A DNA stretch of 64,000 bases from Oopsacas minuta. Taxonomy: Eukaryota; Animalia; Porifera. The DNA lies in contig JAKMXF010000233.1 of NCBI GenBank assembly GCA_024704765.1, positions 124,001 to 188,000 of the forward strand, given 5' to 3'. Below the pieces are notes generated by a model that was not told where the DNA came from, did no database searches, and worked only from the letters and a program-made list of their open reading frames with translations. How positions within the stretch are numbered: the stretch's first letter is position 1; each line of letters starts with the position of its first letter. Both the position numbers and the translations under genes were made by a program. Positions 6,532-60,533 of the stretch are shown piece after piece.

Positions 6532-7152
6532 ATGGCTATAAGTAGCAATTCCAACTACGACACTACTAATTCCACTTTTATGGTATGCTACCTGGGAATT
6601 ATCCAAGCTGACGATTCCATCGCCGCTGGTTGTGATGGAGACAAAACCTGCTTTCAGTTTCGGATTGTTCAATAACGACCTCCCCGACCACGCTTAACAT
6701 TGCTACCATTTACAAGTTGGACGATAACACCAACTATAGTATGACGATATTGATGCAGATTGTATCACCATTGGATTTGACCATCTTCCGAAGATATGCC
6801 CCAAACAAGCATCTTTATGTGTGTCTGTTCAGATACATGTGTGACAGTTCAGGAGAGATTTGCCACTGATGAAGCTTTGCCTCCAGTGGTTCTATACCTA
6901 AATGTACCTTCACTTCACCTGTTACACGGACTCCTTATATGTTGAATAATCTTAATGGGCATTATGTACTGATAGCATGGGGGTAGCGTAAGTGATGGCG
7001 AAATTCAACAGCATCAAGGTTCTGGGGTTGGTGGATGTCATACTAATGATAAGATTGTGCTCACTACTGTTACAGGAAATACCTCTGCACCTGTTCTCTC
7101 GTTAGCTGTCACTACTCTCGTGTTGATGCTAACTTTACTATTCTTAGTGTAG
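6532..7152 (+). pseudogene. Degenerate single-DOMON paralog
   Basis: Recognisable fragments LGIIQA...GCDGDKTCFQF, MPQTSIFMCVCSD..VQERFATDEALPP, and tail ...VTTLVLMLTLLFLV* (TAG 7150-7152), with several frameshifts and an internal deletion. Start position approximate. Confidence 0.8.
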
Positions 7153-34240: not shown

Positions 34241-37200
34241 ATGGATAGTTTTAACAGATTACACCGCTACCTACGTAGACAATCAATCTTCACTCCATTC
34301 CGTAATCGTTACAGATGGACTCTAGCTGTACTCGTATTGTTCTGCTTTACTCTTATTGTTATAACGAAATTGGCTAAATCTGATACTACAATCACTATTG
34401 CACATTTTGATACCAAAATTTATAATCAACAAATTATCGACTCTGAAGATCTGATCGCATCTAATCCGAAAGGTAATACAAAAACTTTTGTGCGATACAA
34501 TCACACAATCAACATCTGTGAAAAACTGAGCTGATAAATTTATCCAAAATCATTGCTTCATCCTGCCCGCGCGTGTTCTCAGAGCCAATTCTTTTAATAC
34601 TCATTCAAGTCATCCACAATACATGATTAGTATTTTGACTATTCTAATTTCTATCTTGGTAGAGATGGGGAGAATTTGACTCAAAGTTATTTTGAAATTT
34701 GGCCTAACATGATGTAGGAAATTTTCTATAATTATCATTGGTCAATGTGTAGCTAAATTCCCTAACAAATTATTTGGTTCAAATTCCTACTTTGCAATAA
34801 TTAAGTGAAGTTTTAGTCAAATTCCAGCGTCTCAACACATCGTGATGCAATATTATTGATTGGGCTAATTTGTATGAGCTATCATAACACCTCCAAATTT
34901 TCATATTTTGGGTCACGTGTACAAGCAAAGTTCTAAATTTCAGTTCCGTTCCGAATAATAGGCGTTTATGATGCGAATTATCGGAATGCTGAATATATTG
35001 AAGAATTATGAATATTTGATTTTTGATTGTTTTGTGTAAGAAATACTTTCAACCAATCATCATTTGTTAGTAATGTGACTCAATAACCTGATAATTACTT
35101 ACAATTCCGTGATAGATGTAAACACCAAGTCCCTTTCGACTTCTCTGAGCGGCTAAAAATGCTTCTGTATCCTGAAACTATTGCTGTCAGTTCAATTTTA
35201 CTCAATCAATTTTGGCATCAAATTCTTATACGCACAAATATCACTTATATTTCAATGCGTTGCACGTAAACACATTCTCTCTTGTTTAGGTATTTTGGAT
35301 TCAGAAGCTCATCATAAATCTCTTCATCGCAGCGTTACATTCTCTTACACACAGTCAGATGGATTTACTAACACTCATTTTGATTGTGAGAAGATCAAAG
35401 CTATAAATGTGAAATATGTAATAGCTAGTGGATTCAATTCTATTATGTATGCTACACAGGCTGATATGAGTAAGGAACTGTTTCAATAGTGTATATTCAT
35501 GTCTAGGTCAGCGGTTCCCAACCTATTCGCCCGCCCGTGGACCCGCTATACAAATTTTACCACATTCTGTGGACCCTGTTCGTGGAAAACCAAAGATAAA
35601 GTTGTTTTGAACAGCTGATTAGTTTCATATTTCTATAGTTAATATAGCTACGTATTATAAAAATTGAGAAATACCGTGGGATTCGCCTACAAGTCATATT
35701 TTGCAAGAATTTCCTTGCTAATATATAATCGAACTTACTATTGGAGGAAATGTCCCTGGAAAAGCATTGCTAAATGAACACCAATGTACATATACTGTTC
35801 TATCTTGTACACCCATAATCCGAAAATACACTAAAAATCTTGACGTGTCGTTGTAAGATTTCAGTGTACATAATTTGAAATATTTTCTTAATGTATCACT
35901 ATTTCCTGTAATTAGGTGGTGGAACAGGATGGCTATCCATCCGTATCGTCTCTAAAAAGTCTCCAGACGTATCAGCCTGTTTATCACAGTTTAAATCAAA
36001 AGACATCAAAATTGACTGTAGTGTTATATCCGATCAGATTCTCACTCATGAAGCAGAGCTCCTAAACAAATTCCATCACCCAAATATAGCACCAGTACTC
36101 AATGTGTGTAAACGAGTTGATGTTAGTAATCCTGATACATTATCTCGCGTAGGAAGTAAGTTAATGGTGTTGGAGGATGCTAGGCCTCTGGATATGAGTG
36201 CGGTACTGAAACTTGAATGGAAAGATAGGGTCAAGAAGTGTATTGATATTGGTGAGTGATAAAATTCTAACGTATACATGTTTTAGTATACTGTTCTTAT
36301 CTGTAAAAGTAACATATTGTGACTTTAACCTAATTATCAGAGATCGATTCAATTAGCAATACGCTACAACATAAATAATAATACATAGATTCATGGAAAC
36401 TCATCCAGGTGGCTCGTTAAAAGGCTTTTTTCGTAACAGATTTGATGTTTCGAAAATCAACAAAACTTTAGTAAAACTCGTTCTCGCTTCTACTTCTGCT
36501 TCTATTGCCGAAACCTTGACATTTCCACTTGATCTTACAAAAACACGTCTACAAATACAAGGGGAGACTTCAGGGCTACGGACAGTGGCTAAGAAGAGAG
36601 GAATGTTCCAAATGGCATGGGGGGTGATACGAGAGGAAGGGGTCTTTAAACTATGGAGAGGTGTAACCCCTGCTGTAATACGTCATATCTTTTACACTGG
36701 CTTAAGAGTGACAATATATGAAAACCTGAGAGAGCATGTTTTTAAGAGAAACTCAAAAGGCCAATTCCCACTGTATAAATCTATAATAGCTAGTATATGT
36801 TCTGGTATGACTGCACAGTTTGTTGCTAGTCCGATGGATTTAATAAAAGTACGTTTTCAAATGGACGGACGTCGACAGCTGCAGGGGCTAAAACCGATGT
36901 ATCGGGGCGTGTCTCACGCACTCACTACGATAGTCAGGGAAGAAGGGGTCCTCCGGTTATGGAGGGGTGTTGTTCCGAATTGTCAGAGGGCTGGGTTTGT
37001 TGCTCTTGGGGATCTAGCTGCTTACGATCTAGCTAAGCGAAGTATCTTACAGTATACTACATTTAAGGATGATATTATTACTCATATACTCTCATCTGCT
37101 GTAGCTGGATTAACTGCTACAACTTTAGGTTAGTTTATTGATTGTAACTTTATTTATATTAATTTCGGCCATTTTGACAGGATTAAACGCAATTACGGTT

Positions 37201-40200
37201 TTGGCCATATTAACTAATTCAAAATCTCAGAATCAGATACTATGTACAAGATTACCTTAACTATCTAAATCTCTAAATATATTTCCAAAAAGGTGTAAAA
37301 ATATGATAAATATACATATGTTCTATATTAGTTGTTCATTTGCTGTCCAGAACTTCTCATATTCCAGAATTAAATATAATTATATTTTTGTTTATCTATC
37401 AGGTACTCCAGCTGACGTCATTAAAACACGAGTAATGAATCAACCTACTAAAAACGGCAAAGGCATATATTACAAGTCGTCAATAGACTGTCTAATTAAA
37501 TCGGTTAAAAGTGAAGGGATATTCTCTCTTTACAAAGGATTCTTCCCGATATATGCAAGATTAGGTCCATGGTCCATAACCTTCTGGTTAATTTACGAAG
37601 AACTTAGAAGTATTTGTGGAGTTGGAACGTTTTAATATTTGCTCTTAACAACCATCACTACCTTACTAATCACGATATTTTATTGTCATTTGTTTCTGAT
37701 ACTTTTTCAATGAAATTGTTTATTGGCTTCTATTACCTATTAAAGTTAATACTTTTAGATTTGTGTGTTTTCTTATGGTTTACTGTGTATAATTTGTAGA
37801 GTAGACTTCACTTGGTTGAGTTACTTAGGGACCAGGTCATTTTGACACGATTGACAAGAATAATCCTGTTGGCCCGTTAACCCCAGCAATTTAACAATGC
37901 AGGGTCGCTGAACCTCCACGGGACCCAGAATCTTGTTCTTGATAAATTGGCTTAATATTAAGGAAATTTATATAATACAAATCCTATGGTAATGGTATTA
38001 TTGGGGTTATTGGGTTTGGTTCTTAATAAGTATCCTGAATGTATTTGCATGCTTTTATTTCTGGTGAAGTGATTTCTCTAAATTACATACGAACACGGTT
38101 AATGCAAAGCTCTGGATAAGGTGTACACATTTTGACGGTCCCTTGTCTTGGTTTCATATTAACTAAATTCTCAGCGAGTATGATACTGCCAAAACTTTGT
38201 GTTGATAGATTTATGTATCGACTTTATATAACAAAATTTCTTATTTATATATACTGAGAAAGTGTCTGTAATTATTATGTGTTTCTCTCTCCTATAGCTT
38301 CCATAGTAGACCTTCTCTACACAAATAACTCTATACAACTTGTACCCTTTGAACCGAGCCAATTCTACATATCATCTGCCGATGATGTTGTCAAGCTAGT
38401 TGATGTAGGCGGGCTGTTTAATGGTGAGCCTACATGTTCTAGTAATGAGGATTGCTATGTAACTAATACAGTAGTTACTGATTGTGTTGATGGGCAGTGT
38501 AAGGATTTCTCATGGAAGGCTAACTCTATTAATGCACATAGGTGGGTTGCTATTTCTATGAACTTTAGATAGAGTATCATATTAATTATTGTTAATTCGA
38601 TCCAGAATTCGAAGCTAGTTACAACCAAGCGATCAATCCACGCGAAATATACCATGTTTGACTGAGTATGATACATAAATGTTATTATCACATACTTACC
38701 AACATTACAGAGATATTCCTCCATCATTTAGGATAAGCGATTTCCTTGTGTAATGCCTGAAATATATATTTAATTCAGAAGTGAAACCAGGAATTTGACA
38801 ATTAAGTTCAGATAATATAGGCTAATGGTGTTATTGCTTATTGGTACATTTTACACAATTTACACTCATTACGCCCAAGGATCGCCAATTTTCGTACTCC
38901 TTATTACTCTACGTATTGCAACAACGAATATTCATTCAATTATTATTGAAAGGCTTGTTAAGTTACAAATTTGAATCCTTATTCGAAAATCGTTTTCACG
39001 TTAACAAGAGGCATTGTGTATACTTATATTGGAGTTATAGGACTGTTTAATTTGGTAAAGATCCAATATTCCACTTTATATACGATAGTTAACAGTGTAT
39101 CAATATATCTTCGCATGAGACGGTCCGCGTCCGGTTGTTCAGAGTTCAACTGGATTAACATTTGGACTCCTAATAGGAATAGTATTAGTCAACCGCACAA
39201 ACTCTGGTGGCTTCATATATTTAGTATCCGTCAAGTTGTCAGATTGAAATCTGTTTGCTATAGCATTGCAATTGTGCCATATTTTGATTGGGTTAATTCC
39301 TGAACTCTGCCATCCTATTGGTTGGTCGTGTGAATAGTCCTTTAGGTATTCCTATAAATACCCTTGTTTAGAAAAATATTATTTATTCATATATATTTTT
39401 ATACACAAATTAAACTACAATAATGCCATATTCTGAGAAAATATGTGAATTTATCAACGACACAACTCTACAGTTCTTTGTCCTTGAATTAGATGGCCGT
39501 CAATTTGAATATCATCTATTAAAAGAAGCAAAAGGTATACAACTTCTCAATATTATCCTGCATAAACATCAAATAACAGAAAGCACGTATTTTGGATTAA
39601 AATACACGAACAGTAAGAATGTTACTAGATGGATAAATATACGTAATCCATTAGTATTAGAAGTTGATAATCCATGTCTACCAATTAAACTTGAATTTGC
39701 TGTTAAATACTATGTGCCATATAATTTGCTTAATGATTTCCCAATCAAGAGTGCATTTCTTTCTCAGATCAAGAATGATATACAAAATGGTAGATTTACA
39801 CTTTCAGATGAAACTGACGATATTTTGCGGTTTTTAGCACTTTTAGCTCAAGCTGAACATGGCGCTTATTTCAAACAATTATCTTATACAACTCCACCTC
39901 ATTTCAGTTTGGAAAGGGACCTGATTGAAGAACACAAGCTAATCGAATCAATAAGTAAAATGGAAGCTCTTGATGAAGTGTTAAGAATCGCGAGTAGTTT
40001 AAGCAACTACGGTAATCATGAATATACTGTGAAGAATGGTTGCTTCTCAATTTCACCTACAACTTTCCAATATTCATTTAGAAATGTAACAAAGACTTTT
40101 CCGCTATATTTGATTATAGATGTTACTCGCGTTTATGGTAGTGTGTTGCTGTCACTGTCAAATTTCGAGCAATCTGAGACCAAAATAAAAATCAAACCAA

Positions 40201-43200
40201 ACTCCATTTCTGAAGCTAAAATCCTCCACAAAAATATCCTAGAATTAATGACATTCTTCACAAGGCCATGTGTAACTGAGGTAATAGCCGACGCAACACA
40301 TAGACTATGGAAAGGTGCGAAGTTCATAACAATCCACACATATGACGTCACACAAACTTGCAGCCAACTTAATCCAAGCTTATACTCAGTCAAACATCTT
40401 GAAACTGATCCTACAACACACTCGATAGAGAGTAGAATTCTGGAAAGGAAATCTAATAGCGAAGAATTCAAACTATACAAAGTTTGTTCTTTACCGGAAA
40501 TTGGACGGATTGTTAAGAGAAAGTTATCTTTCACTAGTTTGAGATTAAAAAGACAAGCTGGCACATGTCAAAACTCTGACAGTATTTCGTCTCATTCATT
40601 ATTATCTTCTGAGAGTATTGATGACGTGTTTAAAATCGCAGATAAAATGCTGAAATGTAAATTGTGTGATACGAAAGATTGCAAAGTGTTATTTCTCCCT
40701 TGTTGCCATTTCATCAGCTGTGAGGGTTGTTCTGACAACAGAAAGTCATGTTTGGAATGCAATTCTCATATAATAGAGAGAGTTAAGGTGTATATTAGTT
40801 AATTAGCTGTTTTACTGGTGTACTTGTTTATCTGAACATTTGAACTTTGAAATGTTTCGCTATTGTATTCTTCTGAACTGTGTGATCCTACAATTTATGG
40901 AATACCTTTTTTGTTTCTCAAGTTTTTTGGCGAAAGGTTATCTAGCAGTGAGCCAGTGCCGGATTTAAGTATGTGGGGCCCTCTTGGAGGGCAATTACCG
41001 GGGCTCCCTGAAGCCAATTCAAAGCTGTTACGGTTCGCCCACCTGTCCCCATTCCTCAATTTATAATGCTTGTGTTTATTGTATTCAAATTTTGCATATG
41101 TAAAATCAACCCTATAAGTAGTACCGCCTAGCTGAAGGCCTATTTCGCCCAGTGACAGCATGGCAGGACTTGTTTTCTAGTATAAGATTTATAGTGATTA
41201 AAATAGAATTACAGTGTTTATCAAATTAATGACGTTAAGTTTTGGGGGGCCTGTTCGGCCGCACACTCCTAACACTCCTAAATCCGGTACTGCAGTGAGG
41301 GAAGTGTCCAAGGTGGAATTTTAGATAATATGACCTTATATGGAAGTAAATTAAATAGACAGCGAACAATTTGGGTTGATAATTAAGCAACTACACCAGC
41401 CTATACACCAATGATGTTCTCCGAAATACCCGCTTATATCCAAATCTGAAATTGTATACATATGATCCCAAACCGTGAATTGACGTAAATTCCATCTGTT
41501 ATATCTAACACGGCCTTAATCGGAGTAATTAGTTCACTTAGAGCTTCGATATAGCTGGAGCCGGGAGTTGACTGTATTGGTATGTATAATATATGTGAAT
41601 ATGATTAATCTAATGATAAATCTAATGATACGTATTGTTGTGTCGGATTGTTGCCATCAACATAGCTAATAATTAAATTTTATGTACTATATTTCCTATA
41701 GAGTATTTTACAGTGTATTACTATCAAAACTCCCTCCTCCTGTACTGTTACCTCATGTAATGCCTTTATTAGAAGGAATACAGAAAGCTAGATTTAATCC
41801 TCCTAGTATTAAGAAGAAGTTGATGAAGTTATACAATGTGTCTCACTATATAGAAGCCCATGAAGTATTCAGAATTACAGGTCAGGATTTGAACTCTATT
41901 AGCTGTATGTGTTCTTGATACAGGAGAAATGGGGAGATGATGGAGCGAGATTTCCCTAATATATAGAATTTTCTAAGTTCTAAATATTTTTCACTAAAAT
42001 TAAACATACCATGGCCGTAGCATAGTCTTGGGTACTCCTATAATTGTATCTATTCTCTCTATCCCTCTTCTCCATCACCATTAAATTCCATTTACCACTC
42101 TGGTAGCTAAGTAATGCTTGCAATAACTCTATTTCTATTCATTAGGAGATCTAGACTTGGATCTTTACTACAATAACAACACATCACTTGGTATTAGGAA
42201 GAACAGAGAAGATTATGTGTATGATGAGATACCAGATGCTGAGATCAGTGATACGTATGTTCAGTTAGATTTATTATTCATCAGAAATACAGCGGTTATA
42301 TATTAACAAGTGGTATCGTTCCGATTGGGAAAAAGGGAGGAAATATTTCCCAAGATTTTCCCAGGGGGTCTCCAGAAGCCCGCTAAATTCGAATATCTTC
42401 GATTTAGGCAGTAGAACTTGATGTACTAAATTGTACGTACAAACCGAATTACGTCTTATCCGAATATTCTTCCTTTATATTTTGTACAAGATTTTGTTTT
42501 CCCCAAATAATAGCCTGAAGTTGCTATTTATGGATGTAACAATCTCGAGAAATTATATAAGGGATTGATAAGTGTACTACAGTCGAAATCAGCTTTTTTT
42601 CTCCCCAAGATGCACGATAAAAACCTGTATTGATGGGTGATTAACAAAGAAATTTCCTAATCACAGATACAACAAAAAGCTCCCAAAATTAAGATGACAG
42701 CACGAATACATACAATACAAAGTATATGCTTAAAGAGTAAAAGGGGAACCCCGAGCCTAAACCCCGATTTCGACTGTGTACTATTAAAGATTACGTATTC
42801 ATGTGTTTCTATTTGTCTATATTTAGTCACAATTACCACTGTTCTTCTACCATAAAGCCAGATCGCTGTGTATTCCCAGTAGACAGTCCTACTCAGGCAC
42901 AAGACCTGTGTTCATCAGATGACATATGTCAGTCTGTATCTATAGCTCCTAATCCAGCTAGCCAGGCGGGATGGTTCCTTGCTAGTTTAAAGAAATCAGC
43001 TTCTAATCTGCTATACAGACCGGGGAGTAGATTATTTCTTAAGAGACTACTGGAGAGACCTAAACCGCAGGTTAGTGGGTAGATTTATACAATCAGAGTA
43101 GTTTATACTGTGGACTATGGTTATATTAACGCCGGATATAAGTATCATCCTCTTGAAAACGGTACTCATACGTATTTCCCTGTTGTACGTATGCCAGTTA

Positions 43201-49200: not shown

Positions 49201-52200
49201 AACAATTTATATCTCATATATAGCACATATTGGCTGGGAAATTGTATGCGTTTTGACATTTCATTTTCGATTTATTCTGAATTGATGGTTGTTGAGGAGC
49301 GTTTTTACACCCTCAAACATTAAAACCGCGCGCATATATATATCTGCAACTTTATTTTTTCCAATAAATACATCCATATTACTCAAATAATCTATTATTA
49401 TGTGCGATATACAATAATTATATAATTTAACAATATTAATTATCATTGCTAAAATCCAATAATGCATTAACCTTTTCCATCATGTAACACTGTACTCTTT
49501 GATTATCTTTATCACAGACGTATAAGAACTTTTCAGAAGCATATATTCCATGTAGCTTATTGAAATGTCCAGGTGCTATACCCTCACTACCGAAATTTAG
49601 ACAAATAGAGCTGTCAGGACTATCGTACATGATAACTTTATTATTTGCATAGTCTGTTACCATTATAACTCCCTCTTCATTGATTGTAATACCAAATCCA
49701 CCTAATAGCTCATTCGGGTCGTTTTGTATGCCAGTCAAGTACAGTAGCTCTCCCATGACGGTGTACACGTTAATACACGGTGTGCCTGTGTGTAGTACTA
49801 CAACCTGTCCGCTTGTGTTTGTATCGATGCTACGAGGCTTCCGTAAGGGCCCTGGACTATTGTCTGCATACCCGATGAAATGTGAGAATGTTACTGGGAT
49901 ATTCTTCTTCAATACTTGCACACGGTTGTTGCCAGAGTCGCAAACTAATAGGTAAGCCTCATGACATTTTAATCCGGCTGGGTATTCAAATTCAAGTGTA
50001 CCAGCACCTCGTGTGCCGAGATGTTCCACGAGAACACCAGTCGCTTTATCGAACTTGTACACAATATGCTTGTTGCATATTGATACGTAAATGTATAGAG
50101 GATCTACTGTTATACCTCCTAGTGATAATGAACCTGATTTTTGTATTGAGTAAGTCTTGTCTAAGCGGAATTGTGAGTCGAATACTTTAATTTCTTTTCC
50201 TTGTACCAGATTCAGTAAGAAAATACGGCCATCTTTTGGGTCAGTAGCAAGTGCGTGTGGTTCTAGCTTTCCAATTGTTTGAGGGTCACTGTTGATGACA
50301 CGATACGGTGTTACATTTCGCGGAGTTAGGATTATTTTACCGAAATTATCAATCTGATCTATCAATGTTCTATCAAAACTGAATTTGACATCTGTGTATT
50401 TTGATACGCTCATACTTTCTAGATCTCTAATTTTGTCCTCTAGTGATTTTAAAAGACTTGCTTTTATTGTTCGGTGATTTTCGATTGTTTCGCTGTCAAG
50501 TGCGATGTATTTTGTACGTTCAAATCCATTAATTTTTGTTATTTTATTCGAGACTGCCAGCATTATTTCATCTTCAAGTTCTTGCAGTCTGTTTAACAGC
50601 AAATCTTTTCTCTCTTGTATCTTCTCGGATAGAACATTAAATTCGTCAGTTACCCTTTCTCTAGCTGTGTATATATCTTGTAATATAAGTGGATAACCTT
50701 CTTTATTGATTGATGCCATTTTTGTTTGTAAATTTAAATCTAATCGTTTCTAGATAACAATTATCACCTGCTATTTATACTAGAATCTAAGGCATTTATT
50801 TGCTTTGCATTACTATTGTTGCCATTGCCTTTTCTAATTGCTTTCAATTTTGGGTTAAAGCATAGTAGAGTAATACTATACTGCTCTTATTACTGAAATT
50901 GTGGGAATTATCTTATATAGATTGCCTCATAATTATTAATCGTGGCCTTGTGGGTAATTACAAGACGAGACTTGAAAAGCTGTTTCGAATACATCTGTAC
51001 TTGATTCGGCTACTATCTTAGAAGTTTCCACCTTTTAGCTTGAAGTATCTTCTTGTGGTTCTGTATGATTGGAAATTGTATTGGTTTATATGTTCGTGAC
51101 ATTATGGTTCTCTCTTAATTGTTTCATCTATATATGTGGTCAAACTTTGAATATGAACAAAGCTAATGCTTGCTATTTACCATCTGAATATCATATGCGA
51201 ATATACTATAATGTTATCTGTATCGTACTAGGTACACTCTTTTCTATTGATTTAATGGCCATTGTGTTGTGATTATATTTGATTGCAGAAAGTCATTTCT
51301 CTCCGCTCAGTCACTTGAGGTTTGTATACCATTGTAAATATATCTGAGGTTTCACTGACTAGCTATATACTTGGAATTAGAAATCCTTAAAATAATCAGC
51401 GTTTTATCTACTTCTACGGCTCTACCTCCCCTATGAAGTAGAAGAGATAGTCTAAATACATAGATATACTATCTTTGAAATGTATCTGAATTTTGTATTA
51501 TAATCTCCCGTGAACTCAGAAGCTGATTCAACAAAGTATTATCTGCTATATTAGTGTATTTAAGATGTTTGCTAGTTACCTCAAGAGGTCGATACTATCC
51601 GAATATGTACGATTATCATATCGCTATAAAATTGCTAATTTACTTGAGATCCGTGTATTCAGTTATAAATCAGCTGATTTATCTCAGTTGTGTATTTATA
51701 TATTGCATTTTATCCTAATTATTTGGGCCACCAGAAATGGAAATTAACTTGCTTAACTCACGTTTTGGATTATTCTTGCCTCTAATTAACTCAAAGGAAA
51801 TTTTTATCTAAGCAAACCAGTTTGCTATATTTTAGATGAAACACATAATTATCCTATAAGGATATATACATGCTAGTAGTGGTGATAAGCATTTTCTTGG
51901 AAATAATTGCTAATACATTTTCTTCATTGGAAATGATAACAGACTTGTGTACATTACTACTGAATTTTACCAAAGAAAAATGTATTCTACCTCCCGATGT
52001 ATGATGTCTACATTACCATTGGAGAATGTTGTTGTCATGTTATTGATGGTTTAAGTATTATACGAAATCACTTCAAATTCCCTCCTTTTCTTACTACGAA
52101 TACATTAACATGTTCTAATTATTGTTAGTATGTATTGGATCATGCAGACAGGCGTATACATTGTAAGAATTGATCGTGGAAAATAATATGATTTGACTCC

Positions 52201-55200
52201 TACATTTTTCTAGGAAGCAGGGGTGGGGCGGAACTTTATTTAATAAATTCTTCTCACGTGTGTGTGAACACGTATAGCTAATGTTTTGATAAATTGAACT
52301 TGCTCATTAACTAATGAAAATTTCAATTTTATCAGTGCTAGAGATAACAATTGGGGCTGGTATTCTATGCAACAGATCATTGTGTAATTAAAGTAGCTCT
52401 GTTTCGTTTGATTTCGCTCACTTCTTGACACTACTTGTATTAGTTGGCGAATAAATGCAAACTTGAACATATTTTGCTTGCGTATATAGCATGTAACTGC
52501 GTAATCGAATGTAAGCAGTGAGCGAAATCATATGGTATTAGAGTATCTATTAACTTGTAATACATTCTAGCGTCAATCAGACCCGAGCGAAATTACAATC
52601 TACATCTTTGATATATCGTCTGTTTGCAATACACTCCTCTTGTCCATCTTCTTTAATCAACTTCAACAAGTCCTATACATAATAGGAACTAAATACACTG
52701 TCGATTATTATTACTCTTAATGTAACTGAATAGTCCAGCTGTTCACAAGCTCTTCTATAAGGATATCAGTTGTCATTATGTTAAGAATGATGAAATGCTC
52801 AAAATGGCCTTACACTGAATAGTTACTATTCATTTCATTGACAAATATTTCAACTAAACACGCAGTTGAAATATTTTACAATATAATCAATGTTATTATT
52901 GCACCATAATTTGCACGCGATTTCTTATTAAACGAATCCTATACTGTATTTTGTGTAAATTGGTTATTTTGCTGTTTGTTGAATTACCCAATTTAGAAAT
53001 ATCTATGATAGACTTCTTGATATACTAATTACGAATTATAGCAGTTTAATTAACAATATTGTATGTAATTATTCACGGCAAGTTTTTGATTGTGATCACT
53101 TTCAATAGTAATTCCTTGAACGTTCTTTACTGTTAGAATTATTATTATTATTGTGATCTTTATGCTAACGTTTGTGGTATCATATTTTGTTGCAATATAT
53201 GTGTAGAATTGATTAATTTCCTATAAATTTATTTTGATTTGTTATTTACTTTCTTATCATGTCAATAACTAAATTTGGTTTCATAATTGCTTTGTACAGA
53301 TATATATAATTTTAAAACAATTTTACTATAATGAGAAACATCGTATAATACGTATAATACTCATGTGTTTTGTTATCATCTTTGATCAATTCTTAAACAG
53401 CTGATTTACATGTAAAATTTAGAGAATTTTCATATACACCAAAATTTCCAAACACTTTAGGGAAATTATTGGATGATAAATAATAATATTTCCTTAAATT
53501 TATGTAGATTAATTACCTGCATGTTGTAAATTACCTTAAAAATATTGCATGTAAAGCTGCCATACAATCTCTCTATGATATTCACAAGCATAACTAATAA
53601 TTTGCTAGCAAAGATACGCTAAATAACTGTAAAATCATCTCAACAGATATATCTTTATTCCTAACTTCTCCAGGATTTCTTCTGGCATACAAAAGACAGG
53701 ATTAACCGGTTTAATCTCACCCTTATAATGTCCAAGTAAAGATAAACCGGTTAAACCGAATAGTGTATGGAAGGGATCAGTTATATCACCAGGTCTATCT
53801 GCTATACCTCCACTCTCTTCATCTTGACAGGCCAGAATATAATCTTTCATCTTGTCAGCGTCGATCCATTTAATCCGTCCGATTATCTTAAGAGAGGCCA
53901 GCACCCACCAGGAGTAGCATACGTCAGGGAGTTTCTCAGGGCGCCCGTTTAGCCCACCTGATTTAAGTTGTCGCTCACACAACCATGTTCCTAACACATC
54001 AGCCTGTACTTTGTATAAACGGTTAGTTATAGCCAGTGCCCCTAGACAACAATATATCTGTCCGGAATGAGATTCAGAGCCGGGAACACACCCGAAACCT
54101 CCGTCAAAGTTCATACATCTAACAACGAAATCTACTGCCTTCTCAATATTAACTCTTTCCAGTCTGTTAATCAACATCAACGATGCTAATGCACACAATG
54201 AGAACCTCGTATCAACCTCACCCCATTTATCGCCAATGAATGAACCATCTTCTTGCTGTTGTCCTGCTATATAGTCAGCTACTTTATCAGAATCTATCTT
54301 ATCTAAGCTCTCATAGATAGCTAAAATCTGTATTGCACTCAGTGTATATAGCAAATGAGGGTCGTTTTTTATATTTCCCCCAAATCCACCGTTTGGACGT
54401 TGGCATGACAATACGAACTCTAAAACCTCATTTTTCTCCAACTTATCCTCTTTTCCGATTAATTTCAATGCAGTTAGTATCCAGTACACTCCGTTCATTC
54501 GGAAATATTCAGACATGACATATTCCAAATCATTCTTATCCTTACCATATGTTTCCAATGACTTAACATGTAAATCTAATAACAGAGATTTCCGTTCAGG
54601 AATATCTGGCAGTTTGACGTCATTAATTGATACAGCCATTTTCTTAGAAACTTGTAAATTTAATTGTATCTATCTTATGCTTGTTTATTATACATATGGT
54701 CTTCTATTAATAATTATACATTAGAAGTTAGGTGAAAGTATTAAATGTTCAGATTCCTTATATATAGCTCAACTATACTATAGTACAGTTTTTGTAATAC
54801 AAAACCCCATGCCCTCATCCCAAAAGGTGGCTTTCATTAGGTCTAACAAATGACCTTTCCTCGAATATAGAAAAGCTAATACACAAAAACTATAGTTGAG
54901 CTATATATAAGTTATTTGTTGAATGTTTACTAGAATCTTTATTTAGGGAAGAATATTGGAAATTGGTTTTTTTGAAATGTATTATGGTCCCAAGAATGTT
55001 TTATGTGTATTCTTAATCCGAATTATTGTCTATATTATTCCACTTACTTTCAAACCGAGTTCGAGTTTGCTGATATGGAAATAGATTTTAGAGTAATTTG
55101 CATGCATACAGAATATGTGATTGCAGTGGAACCTCATTAATACAAACACCAACGAACGGTCAAAAATTTGTCCACTTTATCCAGAGTTCAGATAAAGCAA

Positions 55201-58200
55201 GGCAATAGCCATTATAGGTACCTGATTTGTGTATTTATTCTTTCCGGAAATTGGTATTAACGAGGTTCCACTGTATAGCATTGTTACACGAATCTTTTGG
55301 CCATATAGATAATATAAATTCAAGATTTCCTCAGAAATGTTTGCTTGTTTGTTATTTGTCTCTATTTTGCAAACAAACGAAAAAACATCTATTTTGAGTA
55401 GCGTATTTACAGATTGCATTATTACAAATATATTATTTCTTAATCACTTTCCTTTCTTTCAACGTCTAAAATAGATTTTGTTCAATTATAATCTAATTAC
55501 GTAAATAAGGTTTTTTGTTGCGCCAACATTCATCATAACTAATTGCTAAACTAACGAAGCAATAATTCTACGATTATCGATGGAATGAATTTGATTAAGA
55601 AGATTATTGCAATCGTATTTAGTAATTCTAATAGCTTTACTATGGATTCATTACTAAATTCACCTTTTGTATTATTGGTTTTGGAGACACAATTAGTACG
55701 TACTATCCGAGTATACGTCTTAAGTAGATGTGTTATAATGAATGGGAACTAAATTTGTTTGAAAGAAAAGTACGTATTTATCGAATTCTGCTGTATATGG
55801 CATCCATTCATGGTCATTTAATACAATAGACTCTCGTTAATGCCATGGTGATATTACACATCTTTCACTGAATACAGCAGTTTGTGAGATACTTCATTAA
55901 AATACTCTCAATATATTGAAGATGCTATACTATATCATATTATCCCATTACATAGGTCGTAGACTGTTAGTGAATGAGATAACAGACTCAGACATAACTA
56001 TTGCACTCAGCAAGATGCAGATATCTCCAGATGAAGACTCCTCATTTAAATGCACCCTATCTGCCTGGGCTACCTCAGTACAGGGGATAGCTGGACAGAG
56101 ATGGACTCTAACTCCTCAGAGAGAGATTTCTTGGGCTATTAGCAGTTTCAGTCCGAGTCAGAAGAATCAGCTGGCTTTCTTACTGGCTAATTGGCTTGGA
56201 CTTATGCCATTTAAGTAAGTATTAGTTTGTTTGTTTTAATATTTGTTATTGAAGGTGAAAGGAATCGTGTGTATACGCATAATCTTGAAATTCACAAGGG
56301 TGCAATCCATATTCATCCAGTCTATTCCATTATTCTCAAATATCTGAAACAAATTCTAGAATGCAGTGTCTATTAAGAATATTTATTAGAAGATTCCCTC
56401 TAAACTAGCAATGATATTTGATACTTTATTTAGAGATTATTAGACTCAGGTTAATCAATTAGTATGTCTATATTCACTTCTAATAAATTTGAACAACCGG
56501 CTTAGTTAGAACATTTTGAGCATTGCGCCAGGCATTACGCCAAGTACCAGTGCCTATATATGCGCCAGTAGCCCGTGAAGGCTGGAAATGCCACTGAACC
56601 TGGTTCTTGAAGATGTGTCTGCACTCTCGATCCAGTCGTACGGCCAGATAAATACTTTTCTATAACAGCCTGGTTTTTACCTTATGTAATGATTTGTATA
56701 AGAAATTTTTAATTCTCAACAATTGGCAAATACTGTCTCTAAGCTCTAATGTAATAAAATATTACTGAAATTGGTTTCTTTAGGCATTAAATTATACCAA
56801 ATTTCGAGATCCTAATTCTAACATAATTTGCGGATATAAAATTCACACAGTAGTGCCTGTGTGTTAGCTGTTAGATGCTAGCTCACCCGCACTATTACTA
56901 GACCTTTAATACCTTCGAATTTAAATTAGTAAAAGATGGCGGATAATGTAGCAGTCTCATTGGTAAATCTTGTTTCGGGGAAGAATGGAGATGGTGGTGA
57001 TGACGATGGTGTTGAAGCATTCCAAACCAAACCATACCTGAAAAAATTCGTCAAACGCAGGACAGAAACCAAGATATTAAAGTGGCAAGGTACTGACCAG
57101 GATTACACAGAACTCAATGACGTATTGGAACATTACAAAATGGACAAATTGAAGAGGATGTTATTGGGAGGTGCGCCTTACCTATACAAGAAAGATGAAA
57201 ATAATTATGCTATGACACATGCAGCATTCTACTCACGTACAGATATCATGGAGATTATCCTAGAGAGACATAGAAACGAAAAAACCCCAGATGATGAGGA
57301 CGAATTTCAACACCAAACTTGTCTAGCACTCTACACAATCTGTTCAACGAACTGTGGAGACATAGTACGTGCACTTCTAAATGTCGCTACGCCTGTAATC
57401 CCACAAGCACATTTGAATCAGGCAGCCGCTACAGGCAGTACTGCTGTACTAAATGAAATTTTAACATTCTTCCCTAGAATGGATGTCAACCCTAAGGATG
57501 GTGATGGTAACACTCCATTACATAAAGCTGTTGAAAACAAGCACGCTCACACAGTGCAGTATCTTCTCAATAAGAATGCTAACCCTAATGCAGTGAATAA
57601 TGATGGATACAATACTGTACACATGACATGTCAATATGCTGATGAGAGTGTTCTCTATCTTCTCACGACAAGAAATGCAGATGTGAATGCAAGAGAGAAT
57701 AGAGGTAAATCACCAGCTCTGATTGCAGCTGAGAATGGGAAAGAAGGTTGTATCCATATCCTAGCTGCAGCAGGGGCAAATCTAGATCAGAGAGACAAAC
57801 AAGGTAACGCCCCACTGATCGTGGCAGCTGGTCTAGGTCACACGAATACAGTGAAAGAACTGATCCTCAATGGAGCTTCCTTTGACGTAACTGATAATGA
57901 ACGCTACAACGCACTTGAAAGGGCAATTATCAACAAGAGAGATGGAGCAGCAGCTATGTTTATTCGTCTCGCTCCACAGATCGACTACGTCGATTATTAT
58001 CGAAATACGATGGAAGTTAGTATGTTAAAGATTGTTCGCTACCGTCTTACCGAAACTATTAAAGCTCTCCTTGATCGAATGGTTGTGCAATTTGATCCAC
58101 TAAATCCCATCAAATGGAATATACAGACAAAATATCTAGATGTTGATAACACAGGTAAAACTCCAGAAGATGATGAATATGAAAGAAACAAAACTTTTCT

Positions 58201-60533
58201 CTTACAATACATAGCAGGTTTACATGATGAAGAGATCGCTTACCATGGGACAATACGTCTCGTGGTTAATAAGAAAATGAAACAGTTTGGCAATTTAATC
58301 CTGGGGTTTAAGATATTTTCCTATGTCATATTCCTACTGGCTCTTGCATACACTCTTATTCAAGCTTCATATGAACCTGTTGAACTCGATTACACCAGTA
58401 GTCCAGCAAATATATTCAGGATATTCACCGTCGTAATCGTGATGTCCTACTTCTTTTTCAATCTTATTACTGAAGCAGCAGAGTTCTTCAGAGTGACTAG
58501 ACTCACATATAGGTACTTAAAAGATAAACATAAGGATAGAACAAAGGATAAACAGAGAGCAGCAACGATAGAAGGTGAACTCGAAAATGATGACGTCAAA
58601 CAGGACGATGAGGATTTTAATGATGATGATGATGATGATGATGCAATTCAATTCAATATCCCAATTGAGAGAACAGGACCTAAGAAACAGTCCTTGAAAG
58701 GCAAACTGAATGATCTGTTTTGTATTCGTATTTTCACACAATTCTTTAGTGATAGGTCGAACTATTTGGATGTTTTGGGACTGTTTTCACTCTTCATTCT
58801 AATCTTGCTTCGTGCTGCCCAGCAACCAGCCCAATGGGTATTTGCTACTATTACATTCCTAATCAACGGATTCAGATTGTTCAGACTAGTAGCATTGCTT
58901 CCTCATATCGGGCCATATACTAATATCATATACAAAATCCTCGTTTTCGATGTTCCACTATTTTCTAGTCTTTTCCTAATCACACTTCTAATCTTCACTG
59001 GAGGATATTTCGTATCTCTGAGGACTCCATACACAGCCGCTGGGTTTGCTAATGCCTCCTTAATGGAAAACACAGAACGTACAAGGGGTGTAGACAATGA
59101 AGTACAGTGGGTCTTCCTATCAGGACTTAGAGTACTGCTAGAGGGGAACGTATACGAGGGTCAGTATTTGTTTAGACAGCTTAACTGGCTTGCTGCCTCA
59201 CTCTATCTGGGATTCTTATTCCTCACGGTTGTTGTGTATTTAAATGTGTTCATTGCTCAGCTATCAGACAGATATGGAAATGTAAAGAAATTTGCCGAGA
59301 AAAATTTTGCTTGGCACCGACTGAAGTTTATTGTACAAGTTGAGAGGATATCTCTATTATCAATTTGCATTGACTTCAGGAAGAAATATTTCACGAATGA
59401 GATTATTATCAACAAAGAACAGCTGTTTAGATACTATGGTGTGCATAACATCAAAGGTTTGAATGTTAAGAATTTCACTGAGGATGTTGAAGTGAAGGGG
59501 ATGCTTACTTCTATACAGAATCAACAGGTTGTGGCACGACAGACACATGAGATAGCCAAGCTACAAGGTGATCCTCCTCCTTCTCCTCAACAGCAAAGGG
59601 AGGGAAATGTAGAAATTCGACAACTAAATAACAAGATTGATCAGTTGATGGATAAGATACAGCATAAGGATGCTTTATTGGAGGAGAAACTTGATAAATT
59701 GACTCAAGTTTTGCTGGCGAAAACCTGAAAATTGAAATCTGCATGTGTATTTATGATGCTTTTATGTTTTTAGTATATTCAGGCTGTTGCAACATCCAAA
59801 TTGCAAGATAGTTTTGTGTATATTAGGTTGAGATATTTGTAGTTGTATATATTTACTATCATTTGTACTTTCTATATCTATTGCTTTTGTAAATGGTGGA
59901 ATCTTGTGGAATCTAACAGAGATTTATCCATCTTTATGCCCGGTCGGGGATATTATGTCGTACCGTATAGCATTGCAGACTGACGTAATAATAACCCAAG
60001 CAATTTACATGCCCAAATACAGTTTACTCACGTTATATCAAAGCTCAAGGGACTGTGCTAATTACTTCAATATAAGCGGAGTTCAATGTATTCGTGTTGG
60101 ATATAACAAGAGTTGACTGTATTATATTCCGATATTATATTGCAATACATGATGTTATGAAATTTTTACGATTCTCTCCTTCAGGCCTGAAAACGCAGTT
60201 CAAGTACAACAAGGTTACAACATACATATAGATAATGATGCTGCATTCACTGTTGTACCGAATGATATCTTTCTCTACTTCAACAATTGTCAATTCCCCA
60301 AACATGTGATTGAGATTTTAATTAAACTCCGTGAGAAACCTGAATGTACAATTGCTTCTATTTTGTACAGAGCTCTTAATGCAGATCCTCTCAATATTAC
60401 TTTTGCCTTTTCCACACAGAATAATTTCTCTTTGAAGATTGTCGATCAAATGGCTAGAATATTATTACAAACAGCTGATCAGTGTATTAAGAGGTTTGGA
60501 CAGGATAATGTTCTGTATGAAGATGACTGGTAA
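34241..60533 (+). CDS. 13-exon type II membrane secretory-pathway protein with tandem PKDCC/VLK-like and Fam20-like (pseudo)kinase domains, 852 aa; host of six nested genes
   Basis: Exons 34241-34472, 35290-35469, 35916-36251, 38298-38541, 41702-41880, 42146-42254, 42827-43070, 43283-43348, 43441-43521, 43647-43740, 44957-45142, 55956-56214, 60185-60533. All introns GT-AG, all phases match, total 2559 nt = 852 aa + stop, no internal stop. Motifs run across junctions: KKCIDI|ASIVDLL, NAHR|[21 protein letters not shown]|RRL, GLMPFK|PENAV...HIDND...[13 protein letters not shown]. Confidence 0.85.
36393..37635 (+). CDS. SLC25A27: Mitochondrial uncoupling protein 4, 2 exons (36393-37128, 37403-37635), 322 aa
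   Basis: Three carrier signatures ([43 protein letters not shown]); the phase-1 GT-AG intron restores LG|TPAD. Confidence 0.93.
39353..39360 (+). promoter_or_regulatory. Candidate TATA box (with upstream ATTGG / reverse CCAAT) for the nested FERM-RING gene
   Basis: TATAAATA about 60 nt before ATG 39423; ATTGG near 39317. Motif match only, in AT-rich DNA. Confidence 0.4.
39423..40802 (+). CDS. MYLIP: FERM domain plus C-terminal RING E3 ligase (MYLIP/IDOL-like), intronless, 459 aa
   Basis: FERM N-lobe ([10 protein letters not shown]...TYFGLKY...RWINIRNPL...LEFAVKYYV) and terminal IAP-type RING CKLC...[15 protein letters not shown]...CLECNSHI...KVYI. Confidence 0.78.
   Translation: MPYSEKICEFINDTTLQFFVLELDGRQFEYHLLKEAKGIQLLNIILHKHQITESTYFGLKYTNSKNVTRWINIRNPLVLEVDNPCLPIKLEFAVKYYVPYNLLNDFPIKSAFLSQIKNDIQNGRFTLSDETDDILRFLALLAQAEHGAYFKQLSYTTPPHFSLERDLIEEHKLIESISKMEALDEVLRIASSLSNYGNHEYTVKNGCFSISPTTFQYSFRNVTKTFPLYLIIDVTRVYGSVLLSLSNFEQSETKIKIKPNSISEAKILHKNILELMTFFTRPCVTEVIADATHRLWKGAKFITIHTYDVTQTCSQLNPSLYSVKHLETDPTTHSIESRILERKSNSEEFKLYKVCSLPEIGRIVKRKLSFTSLRLKRQAGTCQNSDSISSHSLLSSESIDDVFKIADKMLKCKLCDTKDCKVLFLPCCHFISCEGCSDNRKSCLECNSHIIERVKVYIS
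40954..41292. mobile_element. hAT-type MITE
   Basis: TIRs CAGTGCCGGATTTA ... TAAATCCGGTACTG; 8-bp TSD CAGTGAGC / CAGTGAGG. Confidence 0.85.
45374..48991 (-). CDS. TBC1D32: Protein broad-minded, intronless, 1205 aa
   Basis: [62 protein letters not shown], and C-terminal TBC-like [43 protein letters not shown]. Confidence 0.9.
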   Translation of the reverse strand: MSNETSSQSESNKLIPGLYKVVSGLNKVNTASKPSSDLLLQLDPNDTNELTSKLKDKLTKCLGPLVAKELEKHNENIISNTHPGVIVNSISENVLDSQSYAELYSSLSNSLKEATLSVVDEMELHSREGSLNNYLSVDSQTSESISLNLQYACMPYISSNYLKELVNKFDTSNSPDVRREALQAIIQFSPSEILSCPDWPTLHMLVTRSLRDQDAFISNNSFGILLRLFSTSNLTAIKEAYLILVEHLLETPYYSQQVRHGIDVCAMENAGLIQKFHLLTLFIHWLPSYWFRFNNAFMTEIIDKTINLLMLCIDHESLVSFSNSHSISPMHILSIIDHKAEWFQKLIHAEYSRTFIVQKLEKHPAFLCTIVEYILAYLRLFQHNAAILEEDIGELDYFYNETSLSYLFFIALLNIIQNFIIFECRLIIFPQTFDGEYFKDKNDAAIHFITIILENLYNENNSIEKQLDPYYITLNALMKILQKGNKLFLDGKILTSLMRSINSKSGSVVSFYQANSHLSYVYDVIQNLTESDTGRKHFFNHEHTHLADLVAQTKNLLQSIPITVLPSTIRGILAPVINLFSTPEGIIHEDTYKIIQLLTGLLKKPAFIQNSSNKYELLHIMSNVMATPKGIVCLKQNNILDDCIEILFLNTDVNLNSYKNSSIRYGYILSQVSNFSFSTNPLQSTSLLDYLTDTLNKQLNRTNEPLLHQQASLIAPLNRSLHKAMYNMAKVFVNYATLIEIVDRKSIEENVTTNIAQFLLDHVLVKSNERINDICNFEEKHVIALALFNLMLSSLDNFLLLEDQFGITTILLSLQNSTVVINDVQVFDQLWYERNRSLLKVGLLGGPKEKMHPHNSLHCYEEIDKNKFQTFKEFPIPTSYGYFKERIPWLPDESKEFPIAQQELQIWFTKLLSSNQNIVILKTTNALLQHIMCQAYGGVFPKNTVTFDSNIKLMTSSSEHIASKLIVQYGCNLRLLKDEESDCKQLLLLIANMKGILINQQYTLQNNLLNTLQSDTYCYDWFIGIMFILTRGDVHTAFTLLSSFSTQLSSCYIWLNRMHKSKILPQDLVVTGRNWGITNILHNLELIVKAELQCIYAGLHISGVSLGTICCIWLQQCFLNYLDFEEICSYILTVLILGIDYQLYFIVSILKHLQTVILSSTQENNLMYCLLENPITGYRLTDWIEYMRELEERWRNSVNMTLPDK
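49436..50719 (-). CDS. Coiled-coil plus NHL-repeat beta-propeller protein (TRIM/NHL-like, no RING or B-box), 427 aa
   Basis: N-terminal heptads, then NHL motifs FEYPAGL...[40 protein letters not shown]...[12 protein letters not shown]. Confidence 0.85.
   Translation of the reverse strand: MASINKEGYPLILQDIYTARERVTDEFNVLSEKIQERKDLLLNRLQELEDEIMLAVSNKITKINGFERTKYIALDSETIENHRTIKASLLKSLEDKIRDLESMSVSKYTDVKFSFDRTLIDQIDNFGKIILTPRNVTPYRVINSDPQTIGKLEPHALATDPKDGRIFLLNLVQGKEIKVFDSQFRLDKTYSIQKSGSLSLGGITVDPLYIYVSICNKHIVYKFDKATGVLVEHLGTRGAGTLEFEYPAGLKCHEAYLLVCDSGNNRVQVLKKNIPVTFSHFIGYADNSPGPLRKPRSIDTNTSGQVVVLHTGTPCINVYTVMGELLYLTGIQNDPNELLGGFGITINEEGVIMVTDYANNKVIMYDSPDSSICLNFGSEGIAPGHFNKLHGIYASEKFLYVCDKDNQRVQCYMMEKVNALLDFSNDN
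53635..54639 (-). CDS. RABGGTB: Rab geranylgeranyltransferase beta subunit, intronless, 334 aa
   Basis: [95 protein letters not shown]. Confidence 0.97.
55124..55273. mobile_element. Tc1/mariner (pogo/Tigger-like) MITE
   Basis: TIRs CAGTGGAACCTCATTAATAC ... GTATTAACGAGGTTCCACTG (19/20 match); TA on the right flank. Confidence 0.85.
56936..59728 (+). CDS. Ankyrin-repeat TRP cation channel (TRPA/TRPV-like), paralog 1, intronless, 930 aa
   Basis: Ankyrin repeats ([39 protein letters not shown]); six-TM region with [11 protein letters not shown] and [13 protein letters not shown]; TRP-helix-like [14 protein letters not shown]; terminal coiled coil. Confidence 0.9.
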   Translation: MADNVAVSLVNLVSGKNGDGGDDDGVEAFQTKPYLKKFVKRRTETKILKWQGTDQDYTELNDVLEHYKMDKLKRMLLGGAPYLYKKDENNYAMTHAAFYSRTDIMEIILERHRNEKTPDDEDEFQHQTCLALYTICSTNCGDIVRALLNVATPVIPQAHLNQAAATGSTAVLNEILTFFPRMDVNPKDGDGNTPLHKAVENKHAHTVQYLLNKNANPNAVNNDGYNTVHMTCQYADESVLYLLTTRNADVNARENRGKSPALIAAENGKEGCIHILAAAGANLDQRDKQGNAPLIVAAGLGHTNTVKELILNGASFDVTDNERYNALERAIINKRDGAAAMFIRLAPQIDYVDYYRNTMEVSMLKIVRYRLTETIKALLDRMVVQFDPLNPIKWNIQTKYLDVDNTGKTPEDDEYERNKTFLLQYIAGLHDEEIAYHGTIRLVVNKKMKQFGNLILGFKIFSYVIFLLALAYTLIQASYEPVELDYTSSPANIFRIFTVVIVMSYFFFNLITEAAEFFRVTRLTYRYLKDKHKDRTKDKQRAATIEGELENDDVKQDDEDFNDDDDDDDAIQFNIPIERTGPKKQSLKGKLNDLFCIRIFTQFFSDRSNYLDVLGLFSLFILILLRAAQQPAQWVFATITFLINGFRLFRLVALLPHIGPYTNIIYKILVFDVPLFSSLFLITLLIFTGGYFVSLRTPYTAAGFANASLMENTERTRGVDNEVQWVFLSGLRVLLEGNVYEGQYLFRQLNWLAASLYLGFLFLTVVVYLNVFIAQLSDRYGNVKKFAEKNFAWHRLKFIVQVERISLLSICIDFRKKYFTNEIIINKEQLFRYYGVHNIKGLNVKNFTEDVEVKGMLTSIQNQQVVARQTHEIAKLQGDPPPSPQQQREGNVEIRQLNNKIDQLMDKIQHKDALLEEKLDKLTQVLLAKT

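Follow-up and report, generated by a model that had tools for sequence, protein, structure and literature searches.

Nested genes, nesting on the same strand and hosts with several guests are already known. Multi-guest hosts are classical: the dunce gene of Drosophila carries several genes in its large introns, and intron 27b of human NF1 carries EVI2A, EVI2B and OMG. In mammals, premature cleavage and polyadenylation signals are selected against on the sense strand, along the axis of U1 and the polyadenylation signal (U1/PAS). Approximately 63% of human nested genes are antisense to the host and ~37% lie on the same strand as the host (PMC3192792). For glass sponges, 2432 nested genes (12.4% of genes) are reported for Aphrocallistes vastus and 83 for the annotation of Oopsacas minuta, and the gap between these numbers is methodological (PMC10282587). 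The O. minuta genome is small (61 Mb, 36% G+C), and the introns, 1.59 per gene, have a mean length of 341 bp (PMC10280926). The locus analysed here lies in a 64,000-nt stretch of O. minuta contig JAKMXF010000233.1 (assembly GCA_024704765.1). This whole stretch is called the window; its position 1 is position 124001 of the contig, and all coordinates are positions in it. The window contains a host gene with six complete genes (guests) in four of its introns. Three guests have the same strand as the host, and host RNA is spliced across two of these three.

Splicing of the host across its guests

The features of the locus are listed in Table 1. The host model is built from homologues, the orthologous exons of relatives and RNA joints. 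All four guest-bearing introns have GT..AG ends and polypyrimidine tracts, and all six guests are nested in the host, as indicated by RNA joints for the UCP-like and FERM-RING guests and by splice sites, phase, homology and synteny for the other four.

Table 1. Positions of the host gene, its guests and the downstream gene in the window (ORF, open reading frame)
Feature	Position	Strand	Description	Basis or splice sites
Host gene	34241..60533	+	12 coding exons, 851 aa, uninterrupted ORF, every intron GT-AG	
Host exons E1-E4	34241-34472, 35290-35469, 35916-36251, 38298-38541	+		
Host exons E5-E8	41702-41880, 42146-42254, 42827-43070, 43441-43521	+		
Host exons E9-E12	43584-43740, 44957-45142, 55956-56214, 60185-60533	+		
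Host intron 3	36252..38297	+	2046 nt, holds UCP-like guest	RNA joint
Host intron 4	38542..41701	+	3160 nt, holds FERM-RING guest and high-copy repeat (~41060-41500)	RNA joint
Host intron 10	45143..55955	+	10,813 nt, three antisense guests	CTG/GTAAGA ... ACATAG/GTC
Host intron 11	56215..60184	+	3970 nt, holds TRP1	TAA/GTAAGT ... CCTTCAG/GCC
Guest 1, UCP-like mitochondrial carrier	36393..37635 (exons 36393-37128, 37403-37635)	+	322 aa	three-repeat Pfam Mito_carr
Guest 2, FERM-RING (MYLIP/IDOL-like architecture)	39423..40802	+	single exon, 459 aa	Pfam FERM_N, FERM_M, zf-C3HC4_3
Guest 3, BROMI/TBC1D32	48991-45374	-	single exon, 1205 aa	Pfam BROMI_N, BROMI, BROMI_C
Guest 4, NHL-repeat protein	50719-49436	-	single exon, 427 aa	Pfam NHL
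Guest 5, RabGGTB (Rab geranylgeranyltransferase beta subunit)	54639-53635	-	single exon, 334 aa	Pfam Prenyltrans, E 6e-99
Guest 6, TRP1 (TRP-type channel)	56936..59728	+	single exon, 930 aa	Pfam Ank and Ion_trans
Decayed seventh guest, DED remnant	44047..44722	+	in host intron 9	tblastn/tblastx against intact 437-aa and 438-aa DED genes of relatives
TRP2	61250..64000	+	downstream of host, non-nested, continues beyond the end of the window	

The read evidence consists of assembled contigs that cover positions 35901-41900. By their behaviour, three of the runs, all of flat depth, are DNA and one (X4) is RNA. An RNA contig of X4 joins 36251 to 38298 across intron 3 (joint at 36250>38297, cut shifted by +1) with GT..AG ends, a depth of 787 and a shorter side of 28 nt. 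Another joins 38541 to 41702 across intron 4 (joint at 38537>41698, cut shifted by +4), also with GT..AG ends, a depth of 760 and a side of 84 nt. Loose ends of X4 contigs connect exon 2 to 35916 and exon 5 (41880) to 42146. Thus, the junctions supported by RNA are E2-E3, E3-E4, E4-E5 and E5-E6, and RNA links the host from E2 through E6. In the same run, the depths are ~1200-2500 for the host exons, 1700-2600 for the carrier guest and 2-8 for the intron outside the guests. The presence of host joints over both guests and of guest RNA in one run indicates that the host is spliced across same-strand guests in tissue that expresses them.

The codon split by intron 10 restores a glycine residue (VPTT-G-RR), and the homologous protein P0090 of the sponge Oscarella pearsei reads VPTTGR. 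In five other assemblies, E10 and E11 show 90-99% identity and enclose the same guests. The predicted junctions 45142/55956 and 56214/60185 are supported by these phase-correct canonical sites, by homology with a continuous high-scoring segment pair (HSP), and by synteny.

An earlier note on this DNA had described one host with six complete guests in four introns, three of them on the host strand. This anatomy is borne out by splice sites, Pfam matches, homology and synteny, and so are the coordinates that the note gave to the four introns, at which canonical ends lie, and the continuity of its VPTTG/RR motif across the 10.8-kb intron. The coordinates of its introns 11 and 12 are right and the numbers are not, since these are introns 10 and 11 of the 12-exon model; the decayed DED gene near 44.1-44.7 kb may have been counted earlier as an extra exon. 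The note had proposed to look for RNA across 36251-38298 and 38541-41702, for synteny in related genomes and for signs of misassembly in DNA reads. Spanning RNA contig joints are found at both places, the nest is kept in five other hexactinellid assemblies, and the DNA contigs are colinear over 35901-41059.

Host intron 4 also contains a high-copy repeat at 41060-41500. The DNA depth there is 5800-7000 against a baseline of 145 (~40x over 41060-41300). Many variant contigs with small indels represent the repeat, and it has no second copy within the 64-kb window.

Transcription and poly(A) signals of the guests

Expression is seen in the RNA run for the UCP-like carrier and for FERM-RING. The carrier's own 274-nt intron is confirmed by an RNA joint with a depth of 1292, and its spliced ORF is intact. 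The RNA block of FERM-RING extends from 39418 to 40885, with a depth of 12,000-65,000, the highest in the stretch covered by the reads. The depth just upstream is 7.6, which makes a ~1600-fold step at 39418, and the depth of FERM-RING RNA is ~25x that of the host. A sequencing adapter, not a leader, abuts the 5' end of the contigs (39418/39419), and an adapter is also present at the 3' end. Upstream of the start there are a TATA-like run at ~-20 to -35 and a CA initiator; a leader joined at an AG acceptor is not found, and no AG acceptor lies within ~45 nt. The 5' untranslated region (UTR) of the mRNA is only 4-5 nt long, and its 83-nt 3' UTR contains neither AATAAA nor ATTAAA. The depth of ~25x that of the host, together with a promoter-type start that lacks an acceptor and a leader, indicates that FERM-RING RNA is not a by-product released from the host transcript. 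These results support transcription of FERM-RING from its own promoter inside the host intron. No A-run is listed at the 3' end of FERM-RING in the RNA contigs. An exact look-up of TRP1 returns a genome scaffold only, and no RNA contig.

The hexamer AATAAA is not found within 300 nt of the stop codon in any of the three same-strand guests, and it is present 80-87 nt past the stop codon in two of the three antisense guests. A first-order Markov model gave its expected frequency in the non-coding 12.7 kb of the host span. The host-sense strand has 6 copies of AATAAA where 14.9 are expected (P 0.008), and on the antisense strand it is observed 25 times against 25.8 expected. In the corresponding stretches of three relatives, the host-sense counts are 11 against 16.7 expected, 7 against 17.1 and 12 against 12.1, so that the same trend is seen in two of the three. 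When all loci are pooled, AATAAA lies at most 150 nt from the stop codon in 11 of 26 antisense guests, and none of the 11 same-strand guests has it within this distance (Fisher P 0.015). The lack of AATAAA after same-strand guests and its depletion on the host-sense strand suggest that the 3' signals of same-strand guests are weak, which is probably why nesting on the same strand is tolerated. This bias fits weak non-canonical 3' signals on same-strand guests that the host polymerase can pass.

Nature of the nest

These results are probably best explained if the locus is an ordinary nest, though an old and unusually crowded one, whose transcription units are independent and which requires no special RNA-processing mechanism. 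Transcription of the host would yield a single ~26.3-kb pre-mRNA that is spliced in cis at canonical GT-AG sites, and the six guests would leave this pre-mRNA as parts of four introns. Each guest would be transcribed independently from an intronic promoter, which for the five guests other than FERM-RING is presumed. The host polymerase would read through the 3'-end signals of same-strand guests. This is tolerated probably because these signals are weak, and efficient host splicing would also help; the UCP guest probably costs the host some of its transcripts. The nest would have arisen by build-up of mostly intronless genes in the introns of a slowly evolving host, with guests gained and lost since before Oopsacas, Vazella and other hexactinellids diverged.

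Several observations weigh against this account. A single transcript from E1 to E12 is inferred from RNA that links E2-E6 only. The RNA evidence comes from assembler contigs of one run, which hide rare isoforms, and one of the two joints is the one with the 28-nt side. ATTAAA has no bias in the host span. The counts of AATAAA cover a single locus together with its orthologues, and the bias is only a lead because these orthologues are phylogenetically non-independent. An RNA contig at 36225-36345 crosses the exon-3 donor unspliced at a depth of 130, against 2-3 deeper in the intron. Some transcripts thus extend beyond host exon 3 and into the UCP guest, and they could represent host read-through that feeds UCP. 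The contig represents either upstream starts of UCP within host exon 3 or ~14% of host transcripts running on into the guest. Finally, AG acceptors lie 5 nt before the ATG of UCP and 1 nt before that of TRP1, and the ATG of the host likewise lies within 1-5 nt of an AG.

The last two observations are those expected if the locus is operon-like, with the UCP and TRP1 mRNAs cut out of the host pre-mRNA by spliced-leader (SL) trans-splicing at the AG before the ATG and by 3' cleavage. A trans-spliced leader of ~37 nt does exist in A. vastus, but it is found on only 4% of the long reads (PMC10282587). In AT-rich DNA such as this, chance alone often places an AG within 10 nt of an ATG. The loose ends listed include none of leader type at UCP, and SL addition alone would be no proof of a precursor made from the host promoter. 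FERM-RING, with no acceptor, an adapter in place of a leader and 25x the depth of the host, does not fit such processing. An operon-like locus is therefore quite unlikely. A combination, in which same-strand nesting is sustained over tens of millions of years by tuned poly(A) strength, with AAUAAA missing from same-strand guests and canonical hexamers removed from the host-sense strand, and in which the UCP or TRP1 mRNAs are partly SL-trans-spliced from the host pre-mRNA at the AG before the ATG, is speculative and also unlikely, if a little less so; if true, it would make the host introns a hybrid of nest and operon.

The premise of the earlier note that nested genes are usually single and antisense holds for the antisense majority (63% in human) and is overstated otherwise, since more than one-third lie on the same strand (PMC3192792). 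Its remark that nested genes are abundant in the genomes of glass sponges agrees with the 2432 (12.4%) of A. vastus (PMC10282587). Its argument that some mechanism must resolve the nesting is not sustained by the host joints, which are ordinary GT..AG joints at depths similar to those of the host exons. Among the mechanisms it offered, release of guests from host introns by SL trans-splicing is contradicted for FERM-RING by the own start of this gene, the lack of an acceptor and the 25x depth. Joining of separately transcribed host segments finds no support, the junction contigs being ordinary GT..AG joins. Suppression or weakness of poly(A) sites gains some support at the sequence level, from the depletion of AATAAA on the host-sense strand and its absence after same-strand guests.

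Architecture of the host protein

The host is predicted from its homologues to be a type-II-anchored, two-domain, secretory-pathway kinase-like protein, in which a FAM69/PIP49_C-like region makes up the N-terminal half and a FAM20-like region the C-terminal one. It is identified via homologues because single exons are too short for database recognition. Single host exons give only noise against the PDB, and none of them matches Pfam PF12260 (PIP49_C), but the same exons do align to the PIP49_C region of the homologues. Exon 12 alone gives a weak Fam20C match in Pfam (E 0.011), under the Pfam cut-off. When the last host exon is used as a library-wide HMMER query, proteins of 804-953 aa with the matching domain at the C-terminus are found. 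Three of these (P0090, P0099 and P0101) have an N-terminal FAM69/PIP49_C kinase-like domain and match PF12260 at E 6e-5 to 1e-9, with P0090 under the Pfam cut-off. One of the two-domain homologues is a complete transcriptome ORF of the sponge Oscarella pearsei; the others are from the ascidian Clavelina lepadiformis and from a Logan contig. A profile of the C-terminal domain from eight homologues matches the structures of FAM20B (5xom, E 4e-7), FAM20A and FAM20C, with E values from 4e-7 to 3e-5. The stretch 'IHIDND' in the FAM20-like domain (exons 11-12) is taken here, by eye, to resemble the metal-binding 'IHLDN' of FAM20C, and the 'DRHHYE'-type catalytic stretch of FAM20C, also by eye, is presumably replaced in exons 11-12. 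The host may thus be a pseudokinase.

In a blastp alignment, residues 140-848 of the host match the 884-aa P0090 of O. pearsei in a single HSP of 763 columns (E 1.7e-72), which spans all four guest-bearing introns. In tblastn searches of the two-domain homologues against the window, the host exons are matched colinearly, on either side of all four of these introns. These alignments bear on the possibility that the host is an artefact of in-frame exon chaining and represents two adjacent genes, a FAM69-like gene (E1 to ~E6) and a FAM20-like gene (~E7 to E12). Stand-alone proteins of 419-494 aa (P0091, P0092, P0094 and P0097) do match the host only from ~416-556 to the C-terminus, and the RNA joints reach E6 only, with none for E6-E7 to E9-E10. 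A profile of P0090 and the host exon peptides, searched against the protein database, returns only P0090 and no protein of at least 486 aa encoded by the window; a full-length model of the host is probably missing from the public gene set of O. minuta. Two adjacent genes are nevertheless very improbable, given the full-length two-domain proteins from three sources, the single HSP, the chain of 12 exons with correct phases, canonical sites and no stop codon, and the constant order and strand of the exons in relatives. The nesting would hold for two genes as well, as both halves would carry guests on the same strand and antisense guests.

Conservation and turnover of the guests in glass sponges

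Relatives of the locus were found via the NHL and FERM-RING orthologues in five other hexactinellid assemblies (ERZ25071281, ERZ25072730, ERZ25766962, ERZ25072740 and ERZ20067936) and four metagenome scaffolds, which were assigned to Vazella pourtalesii by an identical EukProt transcript. In all of them the same host exons flank the same core guests, with exon order and strand kept. Misplacement of the guests between host exons by scaffolding or haplotype collapse is practically negligible: the contigs of the three DNA runs, from the same sample as the assembly, are colinear over 35901-41059, which indicates that this region is not misassembled, and misassembly elsewhere is made unlikely by the same exon and guest order in the five independently assembled genomes and the four Vazella scaffolds.

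All six guest ORFs are intact and are matched over their full length by orthologues in other glass-sponge assemblies. The carrier is the only guest with an intron; each of the other five is one uninterrupted ORF. The closest solved relatives of the carrier in the PDB are UCP2 and UCP1 (E 4e-39), which justifies the label UCP-like. The orthologues are 57-65% identical over the full length for BROMI/TBC1D32, 80-84% for RabGGTB and 76-88% for the NHL guest, the latter in other hexactinellid assemblies including V. pourtalesii. Across species, the protein identity of host exons 10-12 is 87-99% and that of the guests 57-88%. The host exons are more conserved than the guests, and the host is under strong constraint.

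The set of guests varies among the six assemblies. ERZ25071281, which is Vazella-like, has seven guests: UCP, FERM-RING and TRP1 on the host strand, and Beta_elim_lyase, BROMI, NHL and RabGGTB antisense. ERZ25072730 has an additional antisense ORF of 373 aa in intron 1 (L005 3057-4178, -), to which no family is assigned, and two intact DED genes antisense in intron 9; its last intron is empty and 426-503 nt long. In ERZ25766962 and ERZ25072740, DED genes are also present and the last intron is short and empty. ERZ20067936 has a second NHL gene beside FERM-RING in intron 4 (L004 7698-8840, -), and its DED pair lies on the host strand. Thus, the DED pair is intact in four other species, antisense in three of them, and is absent from the Vazella-like contig. 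In O. minuta, it is represented by a remnant, which consists of the N-terminal ~170 codons of one paralogue joined to the final 56 codons of the adjacent tandem copy. The remnant matches in three frames with many stops, and its longest open stretch is at most 62 aa.

Among the six assemblies, TRP1 is present in the host intron only in Oopsacas and Vazella. The Vazella-like orthologue lies in the same intron and is 75% identical, and in the four other species this intron is empty, with a distance of 426-633 nt between E11 and E12. TRP1 is only 52% identical to TRP2, and the possibility that it is a recent copy of TRP2 is rejected for this reason. A second copy of exon 12, which would be a sign of tandem duplication of the exon with a TRP gene, was looked for and none was found. 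The intron sequence on either side of TRP1 aligns neither to the short introns of other species nor to the Vazella flanks, and thus marks no insertion boundaries. Judged by these comparisons, TRP1 is an old paralogue that was either placed in the intron in the lineage of Oopsacas and Vazella or lost elsewhere.

Beta_elim_lyase, a guest in relatives, leaves no trace within the 64-kb window at E 1e-3. A weak tblastx match (composite E 9e-7) connects 55105-55282 (+) with a Vazella scaffold near Beta_elim_lyase (L006 17077-17288), and it may be a relic of this lost guest or chance.

The neighbours of the host keep their position and strand in relatives, namely TRP2 downstream and a protein with ankyrin and AAA (NAV1-lid) regions upstream (29750-33100, +), and microsynteny therefore reaches beyond the host. 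TRP2 has 73-82% identity with the downstream TRP of relatives in five of the six assemblies, against ~52% for TRP1. In ERZ20067936 the downstream TRP is fragmented and the TRP2 match is much weaker. TRP2 is accordingly assigned by sequence identity and position as the orthologue of the TRP gene that follows the host in all relatives. No RNA genes are found in scans of 33-64 kb with Rfam (gathering threshold) and for tRNAs.

Comparison with known systems

The O. minuta host resembles dunce and NF1 in that a long gene carries several independent protein-coding genes in its introns and is normally spliced over these genes. All NF1 guests are antisense; in O. minuta, half of the guests lie on the host strand. 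Unlike dunce and NF1, the O. minuta host is only 26 kb long, in a 61-Mb genome with a mean intron of 341 bp (PMC10280926). In such a small-intron genome, the guests make up nearly all of the intron length of a 26-kb host. The locus is thus a case of compact-genome packing, in which a conserved host splices across introns that are almost wholly other genes, half of which share the strand of the host.

Operons resolved by SL trans-splicing, in nematodes, tunicates and others, are similar to this locus in the tight packing of same-strand genes and in the presence of AG just before some ATG codons. These operons, however, are tandem polycistrons, whereas the O. minuta guests sit inside the introns of another gene, and FERM-RING, the one guest with a readable 5' end, has a promoter-type start and no leader. 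The rarity of AATAAA on the host-sense strand, with the expected rate on the antisense strand, resembles the mammalian U1/PAS axis. It differs from this axis in that the evidence comes from one locus and its orthologues, and in that ATTAAA is undepleted. The locus adds in this respect a testable hint that weakness of poly(A) signals underlies the tolerance of same-strand guests, and the turnover of its guests provides a natural series for how same-strand guests and their hosts avoid premature polyadenylation and cross-splicing.

The nested genes of A. vastus are the closest parallel, with a compact hexactinellid genome, mostly single-exon guests within introns of multi-exon hosts, and microsynteny conserved between glass sponges (PMC10282587). 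That study counts nested genes genome-wide without describing the O. minuta host locus. Hosts like the gene at 34241-60533 are probably fragmented in current gene sets, as suggested by the 83 against 2432 nested genes and by the lack of a full-length model in the database. Unlike the entries of the A. vastus catalogue, the O. minuta host is one with six intact guests and one decayed guest, whose gain, loss and inversion are traceable over six assemblies. No host in the O. minuta genome is known to carry more guests. To what is known of such nests, this locus adds splicing over two same-strand guests at the level of reads and a history of guest turnover across these assemblies.

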